From NCBI GenBank assembly GCA_029953675.1, contig JAMWBK010000011.1, positions 1,178,001 through 1,242,000 on the forward strand: 64,000 bases of DNA. The letters are read 5' to 3'. Under the pieces are notes generated by a model. The model was not told where the DNA came from. It saw only the letters and a list, made by a program, of their open reading frames with translations, and made no database searches. Numbering within the stretch: position 1 is the stretch's first letter; each line of letters starts with the position of its first letter. Below are positions 33,049 to 57,415 of the stretch, one piece after another. The position numbers and the translations under genes are program-made. The DNA is from Rhodosorus marinus CCMP1338. Its lineage: Eukaryota > Plantae > Rhodophyta.

Positions 33049-35793
33049 ATGACGATAAAATTTGCCAAACTATTTTGGTGGACTATCGCACTCTGTGCGA
33101 TGGTAGGATTCTCTGCAGATGCTGCTCCAGTGCCGTGTAGACATGGCAGCTGTTCGAGGGCGCCCAAGTTGATCCCGTCGACTCGGCAGGTGGACTGCGA
33201 AGGTGTTGGAGTTCTTCCCGATAACATACAGCTTAAGAAGATTCCCGGGATCGAGGAGAACTGCGTCAAGGTCGGAGACCTTTTAGAGCTTCCCGGCAAC
33301 TTTGCGGAGATTGCATTGAAGGACGCTGGATCATCCAGCAGCGCCGTCGATCTCCTGAACAATATCGTCGATCCTCTCGAGACTGCATTGAAGGTCGCCC
33401 TTCAGTCCGTCAGCGGAAGGGTCAACGACAACATCTGTTTCGGCAACTTCAAGGGATCGGAATTCAAGGCAGAGATCAACATCGACCAGGATCCAATGCA
33501 CTTCAACAAATGCAAGGAGTTGCCGGTCCTTCAGGATGCCGAATGGTCGGCATTTGGATTCGCCGTGACTGCACCGTTTCCAGGATGTTTCTCTACCACG
33601 GGCACCATGGCGTTTTGTGCGGCTGTGAGCATCTGCCCTGAAACCAAGCTTCCTTCGGTAGCGGTTGTCATCAACGCGGAGACACTGGAGTGTATGGGAG
33701 AGAATCTGGGCGCGGCCACTGCCGGCATCTCCGCCGTTGCTGGTAAAGTGATCAGCTTGGGCCTCGATTTTCTCTCCTGGGGAATCTCGCTCAGCAACTC
33801 GCTCGTGGCGAACGTGAACATCTATACCGGTCATCCGGACAGGGACTTCAAGTTTGTTGGCTATGAGGTCCGTGGCAACTACCAGGACTCGATTAGGCTC
33901 AAGATCAAGCTGGAAAAGTTCAAGGTTCCTCCTGTGTTGGGTCTCAGCGGCGATCACAAGCGAATTGTCTCAGTGCGTGGCGTGGAGAACGTCCAGTTTG
34001 AGAACCTGATATCGTCATTCACACCGGATGACGACGGCGACATGCTCGACGTGTTCGAGTCTCTCCAGGACGTGACGATTCAGGGGGCGATCATCATGAA
34101 GCTCCAGCTGAATTTCAAGTTCTCTGAAGTCAAGGCACTTCGTAAGGTCCTTCCGGATTCCGGCGCAATCACCATCGGAGAGTCGAACCTCTTTTTCACA
34201 ACCGGATCCGCGACACCTCCGGGAGAAGAATATGCCGGCCTCGTCGTCAAGCCGGGAGTCTACGGTCTCATTGGAAGCAACGCGGTCCCGGCAATAATCA
34301 AGAAGCTGCTCGAGTATGCACTCAGTTTCGTCGGCAGCATTCTCGACCTTTTCCCTGATTGGGTTCCGTTCAAGATCGATGCAAAGGATCTCCTCGATGG
34401 GATCAACCTTGACGTTGGTGCATCGGACACTCTGGGTTTTGGCTTCACCGTGAGCACTGAACAGACCGCCTTCGTAATCAACGCCCCGTTGATCTTCGAC
34501 TTCCTGGGCTTCATCACCATCGAGTGCAAAACCGACTACAGCTCTTTCAAATGCAAAGTCGATACCGAGTTCAACACCAAGTTCTTCTCGGCCGTTGCCG
34601 AGACTATTGCGGAGGGTGTCCTTTGGGTCATCAACGAGACTGATGAGCTCTTTACCGACATTGGAAATGTTGTCGGTGCAGCTTTCGAGGACGCCGTTGA
34701 CGGAGTTGTCAGCGCCTTCTCCGAGGACAACATTAAGGCGACGGCGAAGCTGATTGAGAAGGGATTGATCAGTGTCGGCGATGACATTGCTGACGAGCTC
34801 AAGAGCTGGGCTAGGTGGGCGGATACAGTTTTTGAGGACTTTGCAGATATCATGTCCGACTTGACATCGGATGCTGTCAACGAGATCGCTGAATTCGGCA
34901 ATGGACTTGTGGACGACGCCGAACAGATTTTCAAGGACGCCGGAGATGATTTCGAGTCGGCCGCGGAGCATATCGCAAACACCTTTACCTGCTCTGGTGA
35001 CAGCGTCGTTGACGCTATCACTGGCTGCAAGGGCTGCTGTATCCCGATGGGCGATGTTGTAGAGGCGCTTTTGAACGCCGGCAACAACATCGACGAAGCC
35101 TTCGAGACTGTTGTCAAGCTCGTCTCAAATATTGCTACGTCTATTGGAGATATCTTCTTCGCGACCAGGACCTCCTTCCGCTATGAGAACATCAGCCCGG
35201 CTAAGTTCGATGAGTTTAAGTGCCGCAGGCAGAATGTTATCAAGGTCACCAAGAAGTACGTGTTCGGCATCAAGGTGAGCGAGAAAAGGAAGAAGGTCGG
35301 AGAGACATCCCAGGAAAGTTGCCTCAAGTCGAGACTTGTGGAGGCAAAGACTGTTGTTGTCAAGTTCAACGCGACTGCAGACGCAGAAACCAAATACCTC
35401 AATACCCTGAACGCGAACAGGGACGCTGTCTTCGGTGCCAAGCTTACCAAGCAAGAAATCCTGGATTCTGCAGAAATGGTGTGTTCTCGTGATATCAGTC
35501 GGGATCAAGTCGAAGCTGGCAAGTTAACAATTCCAGTCACGGTCACCTGCTCTGCAAAATCAATCGGATCTGACGGGACCTTCTCCGGGCCGGTTGTGAC
35601 GGCCTCCCGGACCAAGGAGATCAATATGTCTAGCACCAAGACTCGTGGTGACATGATAGACCAACTCTGGAACGACGTCAAGAGGACCCTCGCGAATAGG
35701 ATGACCCCAACGATCGCAAGGGAGCCATTTATCATACATGGTGGCACCCTACCCCAACCCATACCCTTCCCCGCCCTCCCTGTCCAACCCTAA
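33049..35793 (+). CDS. Uncharacterised intronless secreted protein, 914 aa
   Basis: Signal peptide MTIKFAKLFWWTIALCAMVGFSADA. Cys-rich N-terminus, beta-rich middle, then a long acidic amphipathic-helix region. Strong C-ending codon bias. AATAAA near 35957. Confidence 0.9.
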   Translation: MTIKFAKLFWWTIALCAMVGFSADAAPVPCRHGSCSRAPKLIPSTRQVDCEGVGVLPDNIQLKKIPGIEENCVKVGDLLELPGNFAEIALKDAGSSSSAVDLLNNIVDPLETALKVALQSVSGRVNDNICFGNFKGSEFKAEINIDQDPMHFNKCKELPVLQDAEWSAFGFAVTAPFPGCFSTTGTMAFCAAVSICPETKLPSVAVVINAETLECMGENLGAATAGISAVAGKVISLGLDFLSWGISLSNSLVANVNIYTGHPDRDFKFVGYEVRGNYQDSIRLKIKLEKFKVPPVLGLSGDHKRIVSVRGVENVQFENLISSFTPDDDGDMLDVFESLQDVTIQGAIIMKLQLNFKFSEVKALRKVLPDSGAITIGESNLFFTTGSATPPGEEYAGLVVKPGVYGLIGSNAVPAIIKKLLEYALSFVGSILDLFPDWVPFKIDAKDLLDGINLDVGASDTLGFGFTVSTEQTAFVINAPLIFDFLGFITIECKTDYSSFKCKVDTEFNTKFFSAVAETIAEGVLWVINETDELFTDIGNVVGAAFEDAVDGVVSAFSEDNIKATAKLIEKGLISVGDDIADELKSWARWADTVFEDFADIMSDLTSDAVNEIAEFGNGLVDDAEQIFKDAGDDFESAAEHIANTFTCSGDSVVDAITGCKGCCIPMGDVVEALLNAGNNIDEAFETVVKLVSNIATSIGDIFFATRTSFRYENISPAKFDEFKCRRQNVIKVTKKYVFGIKVSEKRKKVGETSQESCLKSRLVEAKTVVVKFNATADAETKYLNTLNANRDAVFGAKLTKQEILDSAEMVCSRDISRDQVEAGKLTIPVTVTCSAKSIGSDGTFSGPVVTASRTKEINMSSTKTRGDMIDQLWNDVKRTLANRMTPTIAREPFIIHGGTLPQPIPFPALPVQP

Positions 35794-38121: not shown

Positions 38122-40265
38122 ATTAATATGAATGTTGATGTGAAGGTGCTGTTGATTGGATGAATGGGTTTGTATTGATAGTTTTTATTGGTCGAGATAT
38201 TTTCAAGCGGGATGATGATACGGGAGAATTTCTCAATCACTGTCTCCTTGCCATCGTTCGAACGAATGGTTTAATCGGAGGCTGAAAAAAAAACCCCGAG
38301 GGGAAAAAACGTTGGTGTCATCCTATCGGCCAGGGTCTTCTTGACGTCGTTCCAGAGTTGGTCTATCATGTCCCCACGAGTCTTGGTGCCGTACATGTTG
38401 ATCTCCTTGGTCTGAGAGGCTGTGACAATCGGCCCGGAGAAGGTCCCGCGTCTCCGATTTTTTTTGCAGAGCAGGTGACCGTGACTGGAATTGTTAATTT
38501 GCCAGCCTCGACTTGATCGCGACGGATATCACGAGAACACACTAGTTCAGCAGAATCTGGGATTTCTTGCTTGGTAAGCTTGGCACCGAAGACGGCGTCC
38601 CTGTTCGCGTTGAGGGTATTGGTGTAGTTGGTTTCTGCCTCTGCAGTCCCGTTAAACGTGGCAACAACCATCCTTGCCTCCTCAAGTCTCGACTTCAGGC
38701 AGCTTTCCTGGGATGTCTGACCAACCGTTTTCTTCTTCTTGCTTACCTTGATGCCCAACACGTACCTCATGGTGACCTTGATGAGTTTTTGCCCGGGACA
38801 GTTGAACTTATCGAACTGAGCCGGGCTGATGTCCTGCCAAAACCCAAAGTGTCCGACGCATCAACGTCGTGGTTGACCCCATCGAGGAGATCCTCAGCAT
38901 CGATCTGGAACGGGACCCAATCGGGGAAAAGCTCGAGAATGCTGCCGACGAAACTGAGTGCATGCTCGAGAAGTTACTCGATTATTTCCGGGACCGCGTT
39001 GCTTCCAATGAGACCGTAAAATCCCGGCTTGACGACGAGGTCAGCGTATTCTTCTCCCGGTGGTGTCGCAGATCCGGTTGTGAAGAAGAGGTTCTCCTTT
39101 CCGATAGTGATTGCGCCGGAGTCCGGAAGGACCTTACAAAGTGCCTTGACTTCAGAGAACTTGAAATTCAGCTGGAGCTTAATGATGATCGTCCCCTGAA
39201 TTGACACGTCCTGGAGAGACTCGAACACGTCGAGTATGTCGCCGTCGTCATCCGGCATGAAGAACGATATCAAGTTCTCAAACTGGACGTTCTCCACGCC
39301 GCGCACTGAGACAATTCGCTTGTGATCGCCGGTGAGGCCCAACACAGGAGGACCGTTGAACTTTTCCAGGTTGAGCTTGCCTCCCATCGAGTCCTGATAG
39401 TTGCCACGGACCTCATAGCCAACAAACTTGAAATATCTGTCCGGGTGACCGGTATAGACGTTCACGTTCGCCACGAGCGAGTTGCTGAGCGAGATTCCCC
39501 AGGAGATAAAATCGAGGCCCAAGCTGATCACTATACTAGCACTGGCGGTGAATCCGGTTGAGGCCGTCCGTAGATTCTCTCCCATACACTCCAGTGTCTC
39601 CGCGTTGATGACAACCGCTACCGAAGGAAGCTTGGTTTCAGGGCAGATGCTCACAGCCGCACAAAACGCCATGGTGCCCGTGGTAGAGAAACATCCTGGA
39701 AACGGTACGGTCACGGCGAATCCAAATGCCGACCATTCGGCATCCTGAAGGACCGGCAACTCCTTGCATTTGCTGAAGTGCATTGGATCCTGTTCGATAT
39801 TGATCTCTTCCTTGAATTCCGATCCCTTGAAGTTGCCGAAGCAGATGTTGTCGTTGACCGTTCCTGTGAGAGATTGAAGGGCGACCTTCAATGCAGTCTC
39901 GAGAGGATCGAAGATATTGTTCAGGAGATCGACGGCGCTGCTGGATGATCCAGCGTCCTTCAATGCGATCTCCGCAAAGTTGCTGGGAAGCTCCGAAAGG
40001 TCTCCGACCTTGGCGCAATTCTCTTCGACCCCGTGAACGTTCTTAAGCTGTACATTCTCGGGAAGAACTCCAACACCTTCGCAGTCCACCTGTCGAGTCG
40101 ACGGGATCAACTTGGGCGCCCTCGAACAGCTGCCATGCCTACACGGTATTGCAGCAGCATCCGGAGAGAATCCTACCATCGCACAGAGTGCGAGAGTCCA
40201 CCAAAATAGTTTGGCAAATTTTATTGTCATCTCGTTTGCTATACACAAATACCCACCAATCTGTA
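38122..40265 (-). pseudogene. Inverted, internally deleted paralog of the 914-aa secreted gene; intact 418-aa N-terminal ORF at 38974-40230
   Basis: High identity to 33015-36021. Premature TAA at 38974-38976 where the intact gene has AAG. A ~740-bp deletion (equivalent to 34444-35187) and a ~180-bp deletion near the 3' end. 3' UTR homology at 38122-38235. Confidence 0.92.
38259..38309 (-). mobile_element. 51-nt insertion consisting of the CRE-like element's 3' UTR, with a 4-bp target-site duplication
   Basis: Identical to 27963-28015 apart from A-run lengths. Flanked by CGTT at 38255-38258 and 38310-38313. Removing it restores gccatcgttggtgtcat, matching the intact gene's gcgatcgttggggtcat. 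Confidence 0.92.
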
Positions 40266-44691: not shown

Positions 44692-46512
44692 TCATCTGAC
44701 AAATTGTCTGAACAACAGGGACACGTTGGTTCCGCCAAACCCGAAGGAGTTGGACATCGCGTGCTGAACAATCGTGGGTCGACTCTTGTGGGCAACGTAG
44801 TCCATCAAAAATTCTTCGTCGGGCTCCTCGAGGTTGACCGTAGGCGGGACCACGCCATTGGATATAGCGAGAATGGTAAACGCGGCCTCGACGGCTCCAG
44901 CAGCACCCAGCAGGTGACCGATAGCGCCCTTTGTGGAGCTCACCAATGTCGTCTGTGGAAATAGTTGCTGTTGTGAGTACCAAAAAAAGGAAAAAACAAA
45001 AGAGCACGAAGACAACACAGAGAGTTTGCCAACTGTTCGTCAGCTTGTCCGGTTCATGACGCGCATGCACAGGGCTAGGGAGTTTTTGCAATTTCGGAGC
45101 CAGTGGTACCGCCGACGTACTTGGATAGCCGAATTTTCGGCTCGGTCTCCCAGAGGCGTTGATGTCGCGTGCGCGTTGATGTAGCCGATATCGGAGGCTT
45201 GACAATTAGCGTTCTCGAGCGCGATCCTCATGGCTCTCAGGGCGCCGGACCCATCTGGTACTGGACTGGTTATGTGATGCGCATCACTGGACATGCCGAT
45301 GCCTGCCACCTCGGCATAAACTCGTGCCGATCGCTTCTTCGCGTGCTCGAGTTCCTCCAAAACCATCACTCCCGATCCTTTTCAGTGGAAAAACCACGGC
45401 CGATTCATTTAGCAAAGGTCGACTGTTATTATCCACTTTCAGGAGCCGAGGTCGAAGAGTTGCACACCTTCTCCCATTACGAAACCATCGCGACGAACAT
45501 CAAACGGCCGTGATGCCTTTTGCGGATCATCGTTAAATGACGACGATAATGCCCTTAGTCGTGAGAATCCAACTACTCCGAGCTCATCTATTGCGGCTTC
45601 GGATCCTCCAACGACCATCACCTTTGCGCTTCCGGTCTGGATCATCCTTATCCCATCTCCGATCGCATGCGCACCAGCAGCACACGCTGTCGTCGGGCAA
45701 AGTGATGGACCCTACATAGAAACCACGCGGTGCTTCAGGAACACGTGAATCCTCTGATCGAGAAAGGCATCCTCCGATCCTCCACCAGGATCAACCAGCA
45801 GGTCCTACTGACCTGGGTGTAGGCTATTCCACACCGATGTGGATGCGTATTCTGGCATTTTGCCAGTCAACCAGTCTCAACTGGCGTTCTGCGCTTGCTT
45901 CTCGGACGCTTGATTGCTTAAGACCGTACCTGGAGTTTGTGTTTGATGGAGACATGACCAGCTGCCAGGTTTGGAAGGGCTCTTGGAATGAAGTATGGAC
46001 TGACGCGTCGGTATCCAGCCGGGGAGGAGTCGATTTGCTTAGCTGCGTCGACGACGTAAGCGAGGGAGGTCATACCGACGCCAATTGAGACTCCGGAACT
46101 TTGGCATTGTTCCTCCGTTCGAGGTTCCCAGTTGGCATCAGCAAGCGCCTCACGGGCTGCTGCCAAGGCGTACGAAATAAAGTTCGGAGTCTACGATCCT
46201 CTCAGCTAATATCAAGATCACGCACTAATCCCATGCTCTGACTGCTCTCACCTTTCGCGCCTCCTCCACGGTCGTCCCAAGCACCTCCCCTGCGTGAAAC
46301 AGCTCATCCTCCGCCAGTCCTCGATCTTCTCCTACTCCAATTTCATCAGCCTTCGGTACTTCCGCTGCGACTCGGCTCGGCAACCTCGACGCATCAAAGC
46401 CCCTAATCCGCCCTAAACCAGTCTCACCAGCCAAAAGTCGACTCCAAGTCCTCTCACGACCCACACAAAGTGGTGTAACCAGACCCACACCTGTCACCAC
46501 AACTCTCTTCAT
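44692..46512 (-). CDS. OXSM: 3-oxoacyl-ACP synthase (KAS II/FabF-type, mitochondrial OXSM-like); about 5-6 exons
   Basis: [20 protein letters not shown] (catalytic Cys), [57 protein letters not shown]. Confidence 0.93.
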
Positions 46513-47226
46513 CTTAACACACCACGCACAGCGTAGCTACACAAATTTGCACAGCTTCGCTTCACCCTTTCCACACCAAGCGCTCACAAGATGACTCTCC
46601 TATCGCCGAGAACAGTGAATCACCTCGTCTTGATAACAGACGTATGAGGTTCGAGCACCTGGTCAACTTCCTAGCCCCACTTCGCTCAGCGAAGCTGCGC
46701 CAATTCACAATTCGCAATTTGGAGGACATTGAATCAGCTCATCTTGATAACAGACGTATGAGATTCAGCACCTGCTTAGCATGGACTTTACCACCTCCGC
46801 GCAACGAAGCTGCGCAAATTTGCAGAATTTGCAGAATTGCGCAGCTCCTGCTTGACCGGGTTTTGGTTCTTGTTGGATATCATCATTGGGAATAATATGC
46901 TTTGGTTGGGAGAAAGTGTGCAGCTGGCTGCAGGGATCTCATACATCTGTTCTCAGGACGAGCTGATTCAGTGTCCTCCAAATTGCAAATTGTGAATTGG
47001 CGCAGCTTGGCTGCGCGAGGTGGGGCTAGAAAGTTGACCAGGTGCTCGAACCTCGTACGTCTGTTATCAAGAAGAGGTGGTTCACAGTTCTCGTCGATAG
47101 GAAAGTGATTTTGTGAGCGCTTGGTCGCTTGGTCGGTGTGGAAAGGGTGAAGCGAAGCTGTGCAAATTTGTGTGGAATTGAGAGCTACGCTGTGCGTGGT
47201 GTGTTAAGATGAAGAGAGTTGTGGTG
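46495..47226. promoter_or_regulatory. ~730-bp fold-back (long inverted repeat) forming the divergent intergenic region
   Basis: Arms at 46495-~46775 and ~46920-47226. The outer ~95 nt have no substitutions (two indels of 9 and 12 nt); the inner part is ~90% identical. An internal ~114-nt direct repeat lies at 46625-46738 and 46739-46836. Confidence 0.92.
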
Positions 47227-47276
47227 GTCTGGGCGGCGCGATTGTGTGGGTGGGGTTGGTATAGGTGACTGTGGGG

Positions 47277-50193
47277 ATGATGGAAGGGGATGTTGTGTCA
47301 TCTAGAGTGAGGAGTTTGAGGGCGAAGATTGATCGCGTGAAGAGCAAGGTGAGCGGAGGTGTAGAGGGTGTGTGTGAGAGTGAGGAAGTGGGTGCACTGC
47401 GGCGCTATGGCGAGGCTGGAGGTGAGAGCTTTGGAGCGGATGTGCTGCGTGAGTTTTGTTCTCCTGAATGGAACGGCTGAGATGTCCCTTGTTTTTTCCT
47501 CTTTTTTTCTTTTTTTTTCGGCTCTAGCTGAAGATGTCCCGTTCAAGGAGACTGTTAATGGGAGGCAGATGAGTGAACAGTTGAAGGATATCAAGCGGAC
47601 TTGTGGAGTTGGACTTTCGGACGAGTTCATTGAAACGTCTGTAGGAGCCGCTCGAGATGCATGGTACCGAAGGGAGAAGTCGTCATTCAAGAGGTATTGT
47701 GCGGAGGATAATGACGTTCTTCGTGCGAGCCGGGACTACTTGAATCAATCGCATTACCTCAAGCCCTCACTCTATCCGCTCCTATGGGAGTTGGGTAAAG
47801 AATTTCGGGGTACTGTAGCTCGTGCTTATGACGAGCAGCTTCCTGAACCGCTGACGTACAATGATATCGATCCACGTAGAGGTGATGTTCCGAAAATCGT
47901 ATGAAAATTGTCTGGCTTCTCAAATGCGATGCGTGTTCTTTCCCTCAGCGATCGAGAGGTTCATGACCCCGTCCCACCCAAAGAAAGATCCTGCTGCATC
48001 GGATGGCGACGACTCCGGAGTCACAACAAGGCTGCGTCGAGCTCAAGAGGAGCTCTTCCAGGCGGATGACACTACCAAGCCGCGACCCGGTAGGCTCACT
48101 TTCCTCTGGTCCAAATTGGACTCCCGTATCTGATCGCATTAACATTCCTCGATCTATTCCAGAACGGCAGTCGAGCTTGAAGCGGGAGAATTCCTACACT
48201 TTGTCGGCGAAGAATCCAAACGCTGGCCGCCTGTTCAGGAGCAAGGAGATGATGCTCGCGAGGAAACGAGGCGCTCACTGTGGACTCTGTCCGCCACTGG
48301 AGAGAGAAGAGGAGGAACAGCTCATGACCGAGCTCGTTGGGCCTTTCCCAAAGCGAGACGGAAGTATGTCGCTCTTTGTACATCTAGAATGTCTCTTGTG
48401 GGCTCCAGAAGTCTATACGGACGGGCACGGAAACTTCAGAATGGTTTATGAGGTATACAACAGAGGTCGGAAGCTGGTATGTTTGAGACTCGTTGCGAAG
48501 GATGCGGTAATTGGGGCGTCACGGGCAATTTTCGCTTATTCTGAATGGCTCTTCTCTAGGTCTGCGCAACCTGTGGGGTGAAAGGGGCAACGATTGGTTG
48601 CTACGTAGAGTCGTGTAGAAAATCGTACCACTTTGCCTGCCTGAAGAAGGGCTCGTGTCGCCTTGTTGAAGAACACTTTGTTTGTTTTTGTCCAAAGCAC
48701 CGCGGACGTGCAGATACAGCGATTTTCAAGCAAATTATCAGGTGGGTGTCGGCACTACCTTTGCGAAAGGGAAAAAAACCTTTAATGAGCTGACAACGTT
48801 ACGACGTTCTTCTTCGTGCCGGACAGTGCGGCATCGGCTGCTGCAAAGGCCAGAACAGAGGTAAAGGTGGATACAACGTATGGATTGGATACGCCGCACT
48901 CGTTTTTTACGGGGCTGCGGCGAGGCCAACAAGAAGTCATCTTCTCCCTTATATGGGGTGTGACAACTATTCCCAACGTAGAACACGTGGAAGAATCCTT
49001 GTTCTCTCTGAAGAGAAGGGCGGTTGTGAAAAAGTCCGACCGCCTGCGACTGCGCGATGGAGTTCGCGTCATAAAGCATTCTGTTTACAATGTGGCATCC
49101 GATCAGTTGGCTCTCAAGGTGAGCTTCAGTTCCCCGCTAGAACGCTTCATTTGGGAGGTGGTCTAATTAAACACCGGTGGTGGCCACCTTCAAATGCTCT
49201 CACCGCAGCAAGCACCCATCGCGCATGGCAAAGGTTTTGCCAGTCATTCACCATATCTGTGTTGTACGCTGTTTTTCCCAGGCAAACAAGGTCTATCGTC
49301 ATTCGTCTCTGGCACCGCCACAGCGTCAGCGGGTGATCATGGTGAGAAATTTTCGCGGTTGTCAACCATTCGCGCCCGGAGCAATGCGTCTGATTGAGTC
49401 CCAGTCCATACCACCGCCACCAGCCCCCGCTTTCGCGATCAAACCCGAACGAGACGATAAACGAGTCGAGCCTCCGGCGTCTTCTTGGGGTGCTGAAGAA
49501 GCGCATGTGGTGAGCCAGACCGCGATGGCGACAGACCGACCTCTACCTTCTACGGATCTTGTAGAACAGGCAGTGGGTGCCGGCTCCTCGGCAGAGAATG
49601 AACCTCGACTCCATGATGCTACCGTCGACAACCCCCTGATCCAGTCCCTGGTGCCAAATGCCCGAACACAGCAAGAAAGAACCGGAGCAGAAGATCGTCT
49701 CCCAGCGGGCCAACGCGTGCCCGATCCAGTGGAGACGACAAAGGAGAAGAAAATGGAGGTCACGCCGGTATCCGGGGCGAGTGAAAAACTGGCAGGTGCC
49801 GCACCTGCCAGTACCCCTGGCAATGATGCCGAGAAGCGAAAACCGGAAGAAGCAGTAGCCGCGCCAGTCAGTGGGTGGCTGCTGTTCCTTGTCGAAACTC
49901 TCGAGGAGGAAGGGGAGAACGACCCGGATGCGCTGCAAGATCCGCTTCTGAAAAGAAACGTCGCCTCACTCTGGAGCCGACTTTCTGTTGAAGCGAGGGA
50001 GGACTACGAGCGCAAGGCGATCCAACTTGACCGATCTGGGGTTGATGAAGCAAAGTTTCTGGAGCAGGCCGGACTGCAGCACGCGATCAAAGGCGGAAGG
50101 GATAGGAGAAGCTACATGAGGAAATCCAGGAAGAGAGGGCGAGACGGTGAAAGGAAACAAAAGTTTTATAATATTTATAGAGAAATTGATTAA
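47277..50193 (+). CDS. Nuclear protein with an extended PHD (zf-HC5HC2H) finger and a C-terminal HMG-box-like domain; multi-exon
   Basis: HCGLC...VHLECLLWAPEV...CATCGVKGATIGC...CRKSYHFAC...CPKH. C-terminal SGWLLFL...VASLWSRLSVEAREDYERKA. Joining these into one gene is inferred. Confidence 0.75.
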
Positions 50194-50355: not shown

Positions 50356-50882
50356 TTAAGCGTGACTTCTAGCATTGGGCTTTCGTAAGATATCCTCCAG
50401 ATGTGCATCATTCCCATACTGCGGCATTTTCTTCGAAGACGCGATCTTGTCGTTGAGCTCGTCGTATGAGCTCATATAAGCCGGACGAGGAGTCTCTTTT
50501 GATTTTCCAGTTGCTCCAGGAGAAACATTTGAAGGACGAGGATACGGAATCTTGTAATGGAGCGCGAGCTCCAACCTGCTCTCGCCTTCAAATAGTTTCT
50601 TCTCAATCTCCTCCGCTCCAACGACGAACTGATTCTTCCTAAACAAAGTCATGGACTCTTCGCGTATATACCTTCGTTCTTCCACAGTCTCCCCTTTACG
50701 CATAAAAGTCGAGGCGACGAATTCACATACAATAGAAGTCAAGACCGACAACATCAGAACACCATCAGCGCAGAAGCAAAAAATGCTTCCCCAACCCTCA
50801 ATGGCGTCTTCTCACAATACTTACATTCTCTAGCTGTTCTTAAAATACGCCTGTACAGCGCTAAAGCACGTTTAGAACTCAT
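50356..50882 (-). CDS. LYRM1: LYR-motif protein 1-like; 2 exons
   Basis: MSSKRALALYRRILRTARE|W spliced to EERRYIREE..LFRKN...ESRLELALHYKIPYPRP. Confidence 0.88.
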
Positions 50883-51291: not shown

Positions 51292-52773
51292 TCACGACGA
51301 TTCTACCTTGGGAGTCTCAGAGTTGCTAGGGAATCTTGCAAGCTCTGGACTGTCCTCAACGATATTATTGCCGTCGACCACGACCTCGATCACCTCTTGG
51401 TGACTTACTAACCCATTCTCCTCAGAAACCACCTCCGACTCTTTGCGGCTCTCAAGATCACACCCTGCGGGATTATAGCTCTTCCATACCGTGCTCACTT
51501 TCCTCTCCGAGCATAGCACGCTCCCACAGTGCTTGCAGCCCTCCTCATCTTCATACGGCTTACCATTCTCCCAGGTCTTCTTCGTTATATGTTCCTTCGT
51601 CGTTTTGTTGATGTAGATCAGTCGCGTGTGGAGTATGAGTAGGGGTACAAAGGCCAACAGCGTTAAGAAGCATATTATAGCACACACTAGCACCACCTTG
51701 ACAAAATCACACCAAACGCAAGTTCAGGCTCTTTCCCGAAAGTGCCCCCCGGCGGTGAAAAGGCCTGATGAAAGTGTGCTTACGGAGGCTGGAGTTTCCG
51801 ACAAGATGATGTTCAAACCTTCAACGCCGGAGACACCCCTTTCGGCGGCAGTCTCGTTACTAAACCCGACCAGAAATAGAATGCTACCCCAAAGCGTGAA
51901 CGCAGCGAGGAGGTCAGTGTACAGGACAAACAGGTAGAACCATCCATAGTTTCTAGATCCTATCGTGTGACCGCGTGAGAGACTGAGTGCTGAGTTTCCG
52001 TATTCGTCAATGGAATCTTGTTGATCGGCTCAATAGTCAGGCGTACCGATGCAGTTGCCCAGCCACGTACAGTGGTGATCGAATGTGTCGACGCAGTTGT
52101 CACATATCCTACAGTGTGATGATCTAGGTGGCCTCCAGATTTGGCACGTTCCTGTACATAGAGAAATTGGGCGCATTTGAACGTAGTATGCTTCGGGGCA
52201 TTTTGCTTGAATCGTGTACTCACGGCAATAGTTTAAGGCGATTGTGACGCCGTTTATGACTACTTCTTTAACAGCAACGTGTCCTGGATGAACGTCTACC
52301 GGGAGATCCTCGGGAGGGGTCTCGCTCCGAGGGATAATACCAGGATCACTGAGCGCGGCGAGGATCCATGCAGAAATCGTCATTGTTACCAAAACTTTCG
52401 TGACGACGAGCAAGAAGATCCCCAATCCGGGATTGCTTCCGGTTGTCCAGCCGCCCCTATAGCAATTCACGACGCACAATGAGCGAACGAATCAAGAGAA
52501 ACTGTAACCATGAATACGCGAGATTTTGTGGGAAGCTCACCCGAAAACCGCGTACAACACGCTTACCGAGATGATTAGCAGAAGCGTATAGAGATTACGC
52601 CACCAATCTGCTCCAGCGAGTGTCCTTCCGCAGAAAAAGATCCTGTTCTTCCCCTTTATCCTCTCCGTATCGTACCTCTCGGGCTCGAAAACAAGCGCCA
52701 TAAACCCACCGAAAAATATTGGGAGGATGACCGCCTTCAAAAACCTGAAGACTTGTTTCCTTTCCACAGCCAT
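51292..52773 (-). CDS. DHHC palmitoyltransferase P1 (ERF2/ZDHHC9-like), catalytic motif intact
   Basis: [52 protein letters not shown] (DHHC at 52069-52080), NKTTKE. Confidence 0.93.
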
Positions 52774-53460
52774 CTCGAGGGCAACCTGCGCAGCCTCTGG
52801 TCACCTCTTTCACGGAAGCTTTTGCCTACCTCTACCTATTCCACCAGTCATTAATTTCTTCTCCGGACGCCTTTCTTCGAAAGTGAAACCGCTTTTGCAC
52901 CAAGCTCACGGGTTGGTCCAGAAAAAACAAGTCCCAAGTCGATCTCGAAAAACCTACCCCTGAACCCAGTACAGAGCTAGTTCGAGACCAGCTGCCAGCA
53001 TAGAAGAGGCTTGCACGAGCAACGTGATTCGCAAACTTCTTCCAAAACGCAGCATTACTACTTCGGATATACAATCCAAACTACCAATGACTCCATCAAC
53101 CCCAGGCCGAACTATTGTTGACCTTCTAAGATTCATTTTTGCCGTATTGCCGTTTCGACTGGTGCAACGGATTTCCATCTCCACTTTTGGTAAAGAGTCA
53201 CCTGCAAATTCAATCTATATAAAAATATTGACTGCCTATTAATGTTTGAGAGATTAAATAGTAACGAACATATCTTAATTTGACTGAATTTTTGTTGACA
53301 CTTATACTTGTGGTGCTCGGATGGTTCTCCCACGAGGAGCTGTGTGGGGAAGGAGCGCTGCGACGTGATACAGGGCCATGCTGAGGAATCGGTTGTATTT
53401 CCAGCGTTTATTTTCATGAATACCAGGTAATAATTTAGATTTTCCAGTCTTGGGGTAGTC

Positions 53461-55023
53461 TCATAACGTATCTTTCGAAACAGGCCTGGAGTTATTGTAT
53501 TGGCCTGTCTCGTGCGCGGGTGGAGTCGGTCTGAGCGCCGTTGCGAGATCCGCGGGATGATCTTCTACGGACTCCCTGGAATCGACTGCAACTTCAACAT
53601 CCTCATCATCTTCGACTGAAATTTCAATATCCTCTTCATCTTGGACTGCTGCGTTTGCATCCGTTCCCACCTCCAATCCCTCATCGGCCTCCGGATCCAC
53701 CTCTGGCGGATGATAGCTCTTCCACATCGTGCTCTCTCGTCTTTCAGAAAAGACAACAGTCTTAAAATGCTGCCAACCCTGCTCATCGTCATATGGCTTA
53801 CCATCAGTCCATATCTTTTTCGTCAGATGTTCCTTCGTCGTCTTGTTGGTTAAGATCAGGCGCGTGTGTAGGCCAAGCAAGGGTGCAAACATCAATATGA
53901 TGAGGAAGCAGATAATGGCCGAGACAAGCCCCACCTTTTCATCCGCAGGAAAAATCTTAGGATCTCTGTTCCCCCAGAGCTTCCAGGCAGAGGTATGAAA
54001 CCTTGGCAACTTTTTACTTACCGGCGCTGGAGATTCGGATAGGATTATGCTAAACGCCTGGCTACCAGAGACATCCCGCTCGCCCGCTGTCTGATTCGTG
54101 AACAAGACCAGGTAGGTGATGCTTCCGGCGAGCGTGAACAACGAGAGCAGCTGTGTATGTAAAATGAACAGGTAGAAGGCTCCGTAATTTCGGGATCCTT
54201 TTGAAAGTCAAATGAGAATTTTAAAACTAAGTTTGCAATGCTTTGCAATGCCCGAATGAATCTTGTCCGTGCTCGTTACATGTTGGCCTACCCACGCAGT
54301 TTCCCAGCCATTGACAATGGTGGTCGAAAGTTTCAACACAGTTGTCACATACCCTGCAGTGAGACGATCTTGGAGGTCTCCAGATCTTGCACGTTCCTGT
54401 TCTCCAGTTAGATTAGCGTTATGAAGGCAAAAAAAAAGGTCCAGTCTAGGCATAAACTCACGGCAGTAGTTTAGCTGCACAGCAACATCGTTTATGACTA
54501 CTTCTTTCACAGCGACGTGCCCGCTCGGAATAACTTCTGGAAGGTCCTCCGGTGGTGTTTCGCTACGCGGTATAATGCCAGGATCGACGAGTGCGGCGAG
54601 TATCCACGCGGAGATGGCCATTGTGACTAAAATCTTTGTGAGAACGATAAAGGTGATTCCAACTGCTTGATAGTTATTGGTGAGCCAGGCTTCCCTGAGT
54701 AATGAAGTCGCCAAATGAAGGAACAGCGACTAGCTCAGAAGACAGACATTTGGGAGAAGATGTGGCAGAGTCCATGGTGGAAATCCTTACGGGACAGCGG
54801 CGTACATCACGCTCGTTCCAATAAGAAGCAAGAGCGTGTACAAATTCCTCCACCAATCACCCCCAGCCAGCGCCCTACCTAACAAGAACACCTTGTTCTT
54901 CCCTTGAATACGCTCCTTATCATACCTCTCCTTCTCAAATACAAGGCTCATAAATCCTCCGAAGAATACTGGCAGCAACCCAGCCCTCAAAAACCTCAGC
55001 GCACTTCGCCTTTCAACGTCCAT
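53461..55023 (-). CDS. DHHC palmitoyltransferase P2 (close paralog of P1), catalytic motif intact
   Basis: [48 protein letters not shown]. Same intron positions as P1. Confidence 0.93.
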
Positions 55024-56072
55024 CCTAGTTACACCGTTCAAATCCGCCCGGCAAACCCAGAAGTCGGCTTCCTCGTGACTACACGCCGGCCGATACCATT
55101 CCAATTCGCAAGCCCAACTCCCCCTAAACAAGAAAAAAGTTTCAGAATCCCAATCACTATTGCTCAACCAAAGCGATCTGGTAAGGAACAGCAGTCCTAC
55201 TCAACGCAGTTCTACCCCACTCCCACTCAGAGCTGTTGACCCGCTTCAACCAAACCCTCTAAAGTCTGCTTCCTCCCGACCGCAAAAGGCGTCTTAAAGC
55301 CTGACCGTTTCCTCCTCCAGTTCTTCGAGCCAGGAGTAAGAGTTTGATAAGTACTTAGTCGGCTAGGAAAGTACTCACTTGTTCGGTGGTATTCGGACCG
55401 TGCGGTGGAGCTTCCTGTAATCGGACTTCGAAAACTAATGCCTTGGTACAATTTGCTTTAGCTCCTATGGAGCGAGTAAGGAAATTCAACTTGATTGAAA
55501 GTACACAAAGGAGTTTGGTCGAGAGCCTCAATAGCTTCTCCACCCACGTACGTGAGTGATTTCGCCTCCGAAGCAGTTGTTCGATCAGGTCGAAAAGCAC
55601 CCGTTCGGCTTAGGAATTTAACCTTTTCTTCAAATTTTCTGTCTGGTGAACAGGATTAATATTTTGGAAATAAGTTAATTGACGAACGGTTTTTTTCTAG
55701 CGAATTTTCCGTATTTCAATTTCTTCCTTATGTCGAGCTGGAGCCGTTGGGTTCAATTGAATAAGTAACAGCGGAAGGCACTGCTTCAAATTCAACGAAG
55801 AGGAAACATTTGAAGCTTTGTGATAGACTGCGCGGGTGTGCTTATGATCTTCATCAAGGAATGCTTCCGACGCCTTCCTTTTCCTAGTTGGAAATATGGG
55901 CGGGGAGGTTGTCAAGTGCCTCTGGGGCAAAATCGGAGCTTGGCAGTTCCATGTGTAGCTTCCCGAGTTTTTCCTGTTCAGAAATCGTATACGCGTATTT
56001 TACATGACGAACTCAAGTGTTCATAATTAGATGGTTCCAAAATTGTACAAGCGGGAGAACGCAAAGAATGCC

Positions 56073-57415
56073 TCAGAGTAGCTCGATGTACCCATGAGTC
56101 GATTCGCCCTCAACGGGTTTGGACACCAACATCGGTTTTTGCACGGGTTCCTCGTCTTCACCCTTTTCTGGGTCCTCGCAATAGCCCTCGTGGAGTTTGC
56201 TCGGAGGTTTGCTCACGAATAGCGTAGAGCGGATGGACTTGAACCCGCGCTCCGAGAATGGATTGTGCCCTGCAATCTTCCATGTCCGGCGGTTCTGAGC
56301 ATTAAAAAGATGTATCGCTAACGTGAGTTTCCGGGGTCTTTCTTTGTTCGTTCTTCCCGCTAGTTATGTCTTAGAACTTACGAGCTCGTGCGCCGTTTGG
56401 TTGGTCCACATGAGATAACCATGCTTTAAAAGCAGGTAACCGCTATACAAACCACCGGCCATACACAGAATCATTATCGGAAATGCCAACTGCGAAGGAA
56501 GAATGAAGAGAAAATGTTAGCTCAACCGCGTGCGCCAAGGCCACAACAGCCAACCGACTGGAGCGGGAAGATCACTTACGGCGGCAGCGGAGTTGCTAAG
56601 AATCCAGTCAAAAGCTTCGTCTCGAGAAATACCCTGGGACTCCATTTCCGATGTCGTGTAGAGGTGGAGGTAGACAACAGCCATGGCGAACCTCATCCAG
56701 GAAACAAGGAACGTAAAAACTACAAAGCAAATAAAGTTTCCATAGGTCCGCTTTCCTGTTAAGGGCAAAGACGACATCTTCGTAAGGGGGCTGCATAAAC
56801 GCAAACATTTTTGCGATGACGCACCGACGCATGTTCCCAGCAGAATACTATGATGTGAGTATCCCTCAACACAATTGTCACAGATTCTGCAGTGCTCTAC
56901 CCGCGGAGACTTCCATACTTTACATGTCTCGCAAAACTTAACCTCCACAGGCTGTTCGTTTATGTGCATTATTTTGGGGCAGTAGTGATTGTCTTCGCGT
57001 TCTTCCGACTTGACCATTTCCCGGCGCGGAACGATCCCCGGATCCTGGGACATGGCCCTCCACATCGAAGCGAGTACTACTAGGATCAGAAATTTCGGCA
57101 AAATAATGATCACCAAACCGCCCGTGTGATACTCATCACTCCGTGTCATCCAGAGTACCCTACTCAAGATCGCAACAAGGTCGAGTCAGCTCGAGTTCCG
57201 TACCAACTACTGCGTTTGGTTATGGCTCACGGTCCCAAAACGAAGAGAAGACTAGGTATCAAAATCATCGCCGCAGGCACCAAACTCCACAGATACCCAG
57301 GCCCGAGCAGGGCCTTCTTCCGCATAAAAAATTTGTTATTTCCATGCACCTTATCCACGTCATAAGCCGGCCGTTTCGTCAGAAACGGTGTAACAAATGC
57401 TAAAACTCTCCCCAT
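56073..57415 (-). CDS. DHHC-fold protein P3 with SHHS in place of DHHC (predicted pseudoenzyme)
   Basis: [43 protein letters not shown] (SHHS at 56847-56858), NQTAHE in place of TTxE. The spliced frame is uninterrupted to TGA at 56073. Confidence 0.9.

Follow-up and report, generated by a model that had tools for sequence, protein, structure and literature searches.

A quasi-palindromic region between the divergent ketoacyl synthase and ePHD genes of Rhodosorus marinus holds a mirrored copy of the synthase gene's start

The KAS gene of Rhodosorus marinus CCMP1338, encoding a mitochondrial-type beta-ketoacyl-ACP synthase, lies head to head with a gene for a protein with an ePHD domain (hereafter ePHD), and the start codons of the two, at 46512 on the minus strand and at 47277 on the plus strand, are separated by 764 nt. 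About 75% of this interval is made up of an inverted repeat with 280-bp arms, and the outer ends of the arms hold the KAS start codon twice, once in the gene itself and once in mirror image in front of the neighbour. Coordinates are those of the window, a stretch of 64,000 nucleotides (64 kb) on contig JAMWBK010000011.1 of assembly GCA_029953675.1, where the record coordinate equals 1178000 + the window coordinate. Probably, the repeat arose in this lineage by local inverted duplication and at present provides the proximal upstream region of ePHD. As far as the evidence goes, the duplication is real, but as a small inverted segmental duplication it is of a fairly ordinary kind, a well-documented structural curiosity rather than a new mechanism; its uncommon feature would be that the promoter, leader and start codon of one gene appear mirrored before an unrelated neighbour.

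By gapped alignment, the region 46495-47226 forms a quasi-palindrome, whose arms at 46495-~46770 and ~46930-47226 surround a centre of ~160 nt. The first-pass annotation of the window had reported an inverted repeat at 46495-47226 and had taken the whole ~700-bp interval for it. The position and the arms were borne out by a repeat search, whose three blocks are joined in the gapped alignment, whereas the central ~160 nt (46771-46929) are not clearly palindromic. The parts of the repeat are as follows.

46495-46538 / 47183-47226, inverted: repeat block 1, 44 nt at 100% identity
46539-46577 / 47135-47173, inverted: repeat block 2, 39 nt at 100% identity
46575-46764 / 46936-47125, inverted: repeat block 3, 190 nt at 91% identity
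46495-46770, no strand: left arm, comprising KAS codons 6-1, the leader and the region upstream of it; a ~50-nt core element occurs twice in this arm
46771-46929, no strand: central region, not clearly palindromic, with a local palindrome on the motif AGCTGCGCAAATTTG at 46808-46846 and an A+T-richer stretch
46930-47226, no strand: right arm, the reverse complement of the left, ending 50 nt upstream of the ePHD start codon

The right arm is longer than the left by two stretches, one of 9 nt (GGAATTGAG, 47174-47182) and one of 12 nt that is a slippage expansion of an 8-nt unit (47118-47135), and weak, gappy similarity between the arms reaches inward as far as 46808/46902. A chance origin of the inverted repeat is excluded, because the self-match in reverse orientation has a blastn E of 2.7e-163 and the single-stranded DNA folds at -323.7 kcal/mol, compared with -105.9 for shuffles (z = -33.8).

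The direction of copying can be read from the outer ends of the arms, in agreement with the earlier proposal that one promoter was created or replaced by inverted duplication of the neighbour's 5' region. At the left terminus, KAS residues 1-6 align to positions 1-6 of the PF00109 ketoacyl-synt profile, and the RVVVTG motif is kept in eukaryotic homologues, that of Galdieria among them, in two further Rhodosorus transcriptomes (P0124, P0243, P0244) and in a distant metagenomic relative (P0245). The left arm continues into the intact KAS gene, while on the right side the same 18 nt give way to unrelated sequence, with a stop after 19 codons. Since the left terminus is conserved KAS coding sequence, the left arm is read as the parent and the right arm as the derived copy. 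Beyond the outer end of the right arm, the copy may continue in decayed form into KAS codons 7-18. This is weakly suggested by an exact collinear 10-mer, TTGTGTGGGT, with P = 0.009; a general local-alignment test gave P = 0.07.

47209-47268, plus strand: mirrored KAS ATG opening a 19-codon open reading frame (ORF), MKRVVVVWAARLCGWGWYR, with its stop at 47266-47268
47227-47251, no strand: possible degenerate continuation into KAS codons 7-18, GTCTGG and TTGTGTGGGT, collinear with 46459-46494

The outermost part of the right arm, ATGAAGAGAGTTGTGGTG (47209-47226, plus strand), matches KAS codons 1-6 (46512-46495, minus strand), the start codon included, without a single difference, just as had been noticed at first sight of the sequence. 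The mirrored ATG stands in the same sequence context as at the KAS start, its ORF ends 8 nt before the ePHD ATG, and it is the sole plus-strand ATG in the 379 nt before the ePHD start (46898-47276). As the true start of ePHD it was ruled out by the stop after 19 codons and by an orthologue ORF that begins with MVDMMDGE. The 19-codon ORF would count as an upstream ORF (uORF) only where ePHD transcription begins ahead of the mirrored ATG. Because the right copy stops just 50 nt short of the ePHD ATG, it would, judged from its position, now supply most of the ePHD proximal upstream region and probably its leader. Upstream of the mirrored starts, sense ATGs number 0 in 310 nt on the plus strand (46899-47208; ~4-6 expected) and 0 in 216 nt on the minus strand (46513-46728; ~3-4 expected).

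The KAS-coding terminus of the left arm also bears on the suggestion that a non-autonomous DNA transposon, Foldback-like or a miniature inverted-repeat transposable element (MITE), was inserted in the interval between KAS and ePHD. The long inverted arms at the ends, parts of which contain sub-repeats, would suit such an element, and the region shares with Foldback elements and MITEs the long arms, the internal sub-repeats and the lack of coding capacity. However, a terminus made of conserved KAS coding sequence is incompatible with an inserted element. No target-site duplication was found: neither at the termini nor close to them do the flanks, ...CACACCTGT on the left and GTCTGGGCG... on the right, have a direct repeat in common. 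In addition, no further copy of the arms, of the 114-nt unit described below or of either motif occurs in the 64-kb window, the ORFs inside the repeat have no Pfam match and the repeat matches no Rfam family. The published RepeatMasker table lists 35 DNA-transposon fragments for the 31-Mb genome, or 0.03% of it. Unlike a Foldback element or MITE, the repeat has no target-site duplication, is single-copy in 64 kb and ends in a host coding terminus, so that membership is rejected and the Foldback-like mediation entertained in the first-pass annotation was abandoned; a transposon of any such kind is very unlikely. Two further origins were considered and set aside. Nuclear mitochondrial DNA segments (NUMTs) are abundant in the genome, and a NUMT origin cannot explain an arm ending in KAS coding sequence; a micro-inversion with staggered breaks (PMC3355041) is at odds with copies only 160 nt apart.

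The inner arms contain sub-repeats.

46608-46721 and 46722-46835, plus strand: two tandem ~114-nt units in the left half, 77% alike (repeat search and alignment)
46984-47092 (full) and 46938-46978 (partial), minus strand: reversed units in the right arm (alignment)
46630-46648 (+), 46744-46762 (+), 46938-46956 (-) and 47052-47070 (-): four copies of the core element TTGATAACAGACGTATGAG, symmetrical about the centre (motif search)

The inner arms had been described as built of ~114-nt units. Such units do exist, but they are only 77% alike, and among the four tandem or inverted copies only a ~50-nt core around TTGATAACAGACGTATGAG is well conserved. TTGATAACAGACGTATGAG has 4 matches in the 64-kb window vs 0.02 expected, with none outside the repeat. 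A second motif, AGCTGCGCAAATTTG, builds small local palindromes and was found nowhere else in the window. A scan for sigma-70 promoters and terminators, which does not apply to a eukaryote, gave no match. Since neither motif occurs beyond this locus, they cannot be recognised as promoter elements of a general kind, and this fits an account in which the repeat is a neutral structural relic with no regulatory effect, ePHD relies on elements in the centre or in the final ~50-70 nt, and identity in the outer block results from recent conversion or repair. It is also in keeping with such a relic that nearby inverted duplications of similar divergence have no obvious function, and that nothing evident connects the function of a mitochondrial fatty-acid synthase enzyme with that of a chromatin reader. 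On the other hand, the ePHD upstream region is almost wholly copy, which makes it difficult to deny the copy any part in the promoter; the ~50-nt core is better conserved than its surroundings in all four copies, and the outer block carries no substitutions. A relic without effect is thus regarded as possible, though on the unlikely side.

Identity between the arms is uneven. The first arm-to-arm substitution in the gapped alignment lies at 46590/47110, which upholds the claim that the outer ~95 nt are free of substitutions, though two indels are present within this otherwise substitution-free block.

46495-46589, no strand: substitution-free outer block of the left arm, 95 nt, with its partner at 47111-47226
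47111-47226, no strand: substitution-free outer block of the right arm, 116 nt (95 + 9 + 12), including the 9-nt insertion and the slippage expansion

Substitutions number 0/95 in the outer block vs 18/175 (10.3%) in the stretch next inward (Fisher p = 0.0005), and the latter count agrees with the ~90% identity first given for the inner arms. Altogether, the arms differ by 18-19 substitutions, ~12 transitions and 7 transversions, plus two indels, and these differences were judged to be evenly spread. The identity of the outer block may reflect either conversion-like homogenisation from left to right followed by later indels, or stronger constraint acting on core promoter and leader alike in each of the copies; the identical 18 nt, which are non-coding on the right side, speak mildly against pure selection. 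In a stronger version of such a model, the palindrome would be an actively maintained symmetric promoter-plus-leader, its outer ~95 nt being held identical by concerted evolution or selection, and both mRNAs would share the leader and ATG-MKRVVV. Such an arrangement would couple KAS and ePHD transcription and put ePHD translation under a KAS-derived uORF, and it is considered unlikely. The large arms of the palindromes on the human Y chromosome are homogenised by gene conversion. The KAS-ePHD repeat is like them in that identity varies along the arms, with one block matching far better than expected, but its arms are shorter by three to four orders of magnitude, and the identical block still contains indels.

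The same differences speak to the reality of the structure. Palindromic chimeras occur in long-read data, and a chimeric Nanopore fold-back, or homogenisation of the outer block by Pilon, could in principle imitate a repeat of this form. The CCMP1338 assembly was made from Oxford Nanopore Technologies (ONT) reads with NextDenovo and polished in three Pilon rounds with 100-bp Illumina reads (PMC10250338). Against an artefact, the ~19 arm differences with a natural transition bias, together with two indels, look like real mutations; the structure is only 730 bp, far below read length, and the flanking genes are intact; and 100-bp reads reach unique sequence from any point of the identical block. 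An assembly or polishing artefact is therefore the least probable of the explanations weighed here.

The age of the duplication can be approached by comparison with related strains. As a local, near-neutral yardstick, related-strain contigs L001-L003 were used, which are ~86-88% identical overall and stop at window 46482 or 45866, short of the intergenic region. Between-strain divergence at introns, 3' intergenic DNA and third codon positions is 18-30%, and the inner arm-to-arm divergence of 10% (Jukes-Cantor (JC) 0.11) lies below this near-neutral range. The duplication would be younger than the split of these Rhodosorus strains, unless the arms are constrained or homogenised. The KAS transcript contigs L001 and L002, which are isoform contigs, begin 30 nt inside the KAS coding sequence, both at window 46482 and 13 nt outside the repeat; this shared end would fit an inverted repeat breaking the assembly graph in that strain, though it is no more than a hint.

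An exhaustive representative search with KAS exon 1 gave two close matches without a contig on record, together with a metagenomic contig, L005, usable as a remote outgroup. L005 has the same KAS exon 1 and intron position, with 56% amino-acid identity in exon 1 and 63% G+C. The inverted repeat was not found in the 590 nt upstream of KAS in this very diverged sequence, and no ePHD gene is visible on the short contig. Because the upstream sequence of L005 has no inverted repeat, the repeat appears not to be an old feature of the locus but a lineage-specific one. Two metagenome scans for related intergenic DNA gave no match in a collection that evidently lacks the sample holding L001.

Based on these comparisons, a model of local inverted duplication is favoured. 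In this model, a piece of ~280 bp, or perhaps ~310 bp, from the 5' end of KAS would have been copied in reverse ~160 bp further upstream, likely through fold-back priming or a template switch while a break was repaired or the DNA replicated. The copied piece would run from the first 6 (perhaps 18) KAS codons through the leader into the proximal upstream region, in which the ~50-nt element is repeated, and would have landed 50 nt before the ePHD start codon, giving rise to a nearly palindromic divergent intergenic region of 764 bp. Both genes would then face the same cis-elements in mirror order, namely four TTGATAACAGACGTATGAG, two per orientation, and the AGCTGCGCAAATTTG-type palindromes. Co-regulation of the pair and formation of a cruciform, both raised in the first-pass annotation, would be putative consequences. 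Should the mirrored core promoter fire at the mirrored position, the ePHD mRNA would start with the KAS leader and the KAS ATG, and this KAS-derived ATG would open the 19-codon uORF and may damp ePHD translation. If the copy drives ePHD, the locus would be a clean, datable natural example in which a small inverted duplication gave a gene its neighbour's promoter and leader along with the start codon, and a concrete route to a bidirectional promoter and a new uORF.

Several points weigh against this model. No convincing microhomology was identified at the junctions, and the copying direction is demonstrated for the outer end only. One duplication event cannot explain 0/95 vs 18/175 substitutions, so a second process must be assumed; if that process is homogenisation, the 9-nt indel inside the block is awkward and mildly disfavours a single recent conversion tract. 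The promoter, leader and uORF roles are deduced from position alone, and the right arm is ATG-poor on both strands, which makes the depletion of ATGs a weak sign of a long leader. Finally, 4% of the genome is unclassified repeat in the published RepeatMasker table, a point that also favours a transposon.

Local inverted duplication has further instances in the window. A stretch of 51 nt from the coding sequence of succinyl-CoA ligase alpha recurs in inverted form, at 92% identity, ~350 nt upstream of the first exon of that gene (1043-1093 and 1903-1953). Tail-to-tail paralogues of a large secreted-looking protein lie at 33049-35793 (+) and ~38366-40248 (-), with arms 87-94% identical including the 3' flanks; the second of them looks interrupted or partly decayed. 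Counting the KAS-ePHD repeat, the 64-kb window holds three inverted duplications. RAD52 was reported absent from this algal class, and its absence was tied by the authors to microhomology-mediated recombination in the organelle (PMC10250338). Because of the two further inverted duplications in the window and the reported absence of RAD52, it is suggested that small inverted duplications are not rare in this lineage, and the KAS-ePHD repeat adds to the signs that a RAD52-lacking algal lineage is prone to them.

The arrangement can be compared with systems described elsewhere. Like the genes at bidirectional promoters, KAS and ePHD lie on opposite strands with starts 764 nt apart (<~1 kb) and share one intergenic region, and both are expressed in related strains. 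However, the described bidirectional promoters are generally short and without large-scale symmetry, whereas here the arms are 280 bp and include a start codon, and shared promoter activity is only putative. As in fold-back or template-switch inverted duplications, two inverted copies surround a short unique spacer, one of them continuous with the source gene and the other abutting unrelated sequence. Inverted duplications of gene ends occur at inversion breakpoints in Drosophila (PMC3355041). The present event differs from fold-back or template-switch duplications in being very small and lying wholly in a promoter region, with copies 160 nt apart that do not flank a large inverted segment.

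For young microRNA (miRNA) genes of plants, inverted duplication of the target gene was proposed as the origin, an idea also taken up in bioRxiv 10.1101/2024.07.25.605110. The KAS-ePHD repeat resembles young small-RNA genes of this model as a hairpin-capable repeat derived from part of a protein-coding gene, but it includes just 18-54 nt of coding sequence and is located in a divergent promoter. A hairpin-RNA locus would require a transcript across both arms, which would form ~280-bp imperfect double-stranded RNA (dsRNA) and yield small RNAs against the KAS leader and start. The derivation of the repeat from a gene 5' end, the extremely stable fold of a strand spanning both arms (z = -34) and the match to the proposed origin of young plant miRNA genes accord with such a locus. 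Nevertheless, read-through would need to cross the divergent promoter region, and no Rfam miRNA family was matched, the best E being 0.48 at 19 bits vs a gathering score of 80; a hairpin-RNA function is judged improbable.

Both flanking genes are intact, and expressed orthologues of each occur in related strains, with agreeing start regions.

44692-46512, minus strand: KAS gene, NDN08_007323 / KAJ8901477.1, 432 aa (spliced model from the minus strand identical to KAJ8901477.1, P0122)
47277-50193, plus strand: ePHD gene, NDN08_007324 / KAJ8901478.1, 788 aa (annotation and retrieved protein P0126)

Exon 1 of KAS spans 46252-46512, with the start codon at 46510-46512 (exon limits by tblastn), and the protein matches PF00109 and PF02801. 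This KAS, of the alpha-proteobacterial type that is the mitochondrial type, lacks an N-terminal presequence, the Pfam domain beginning at residue 1, whereas the Galdieria homologue bears an N-terminal extension of ~37 aa. According to the genome paper, transit peptides are seldom detected in R. marinus (PMC10250338).

The neighbour had been called an ePHD/HMG gene. Its ePHD domain was recovered as PF13771 (zf-HC5HC2H, E 6.5e-12), whereas the HMG box is sub-threshold, with E 0.14 and 13 bits vs a cut-off of 25.4, at P0126 residues 680-731 (window ~49800-50000). The MMETSP orthologue P0127 (779 aa) is the one beginning with MVDMMDGE, in agreement with the start region of NDN08_007324. The word-indexed protein search gives unreliable negatives, as a 189-aa query from ePHD exons 2-3 missed the window's own P0126 and the MMETSP orthologues, which were found with another query. 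Further along the window, a gene for a Complex1_LYR (LYR-motif) protein is located at 50356-50882 on the minus strand, two genes from the mitochondrial KAS. LYR proteins bind acyl-ACP from mitochondrial fatty-acid synthesis. Beyond the LYR gene lie three tandem DHHC palmitoyltransferase genes (51292-56513).

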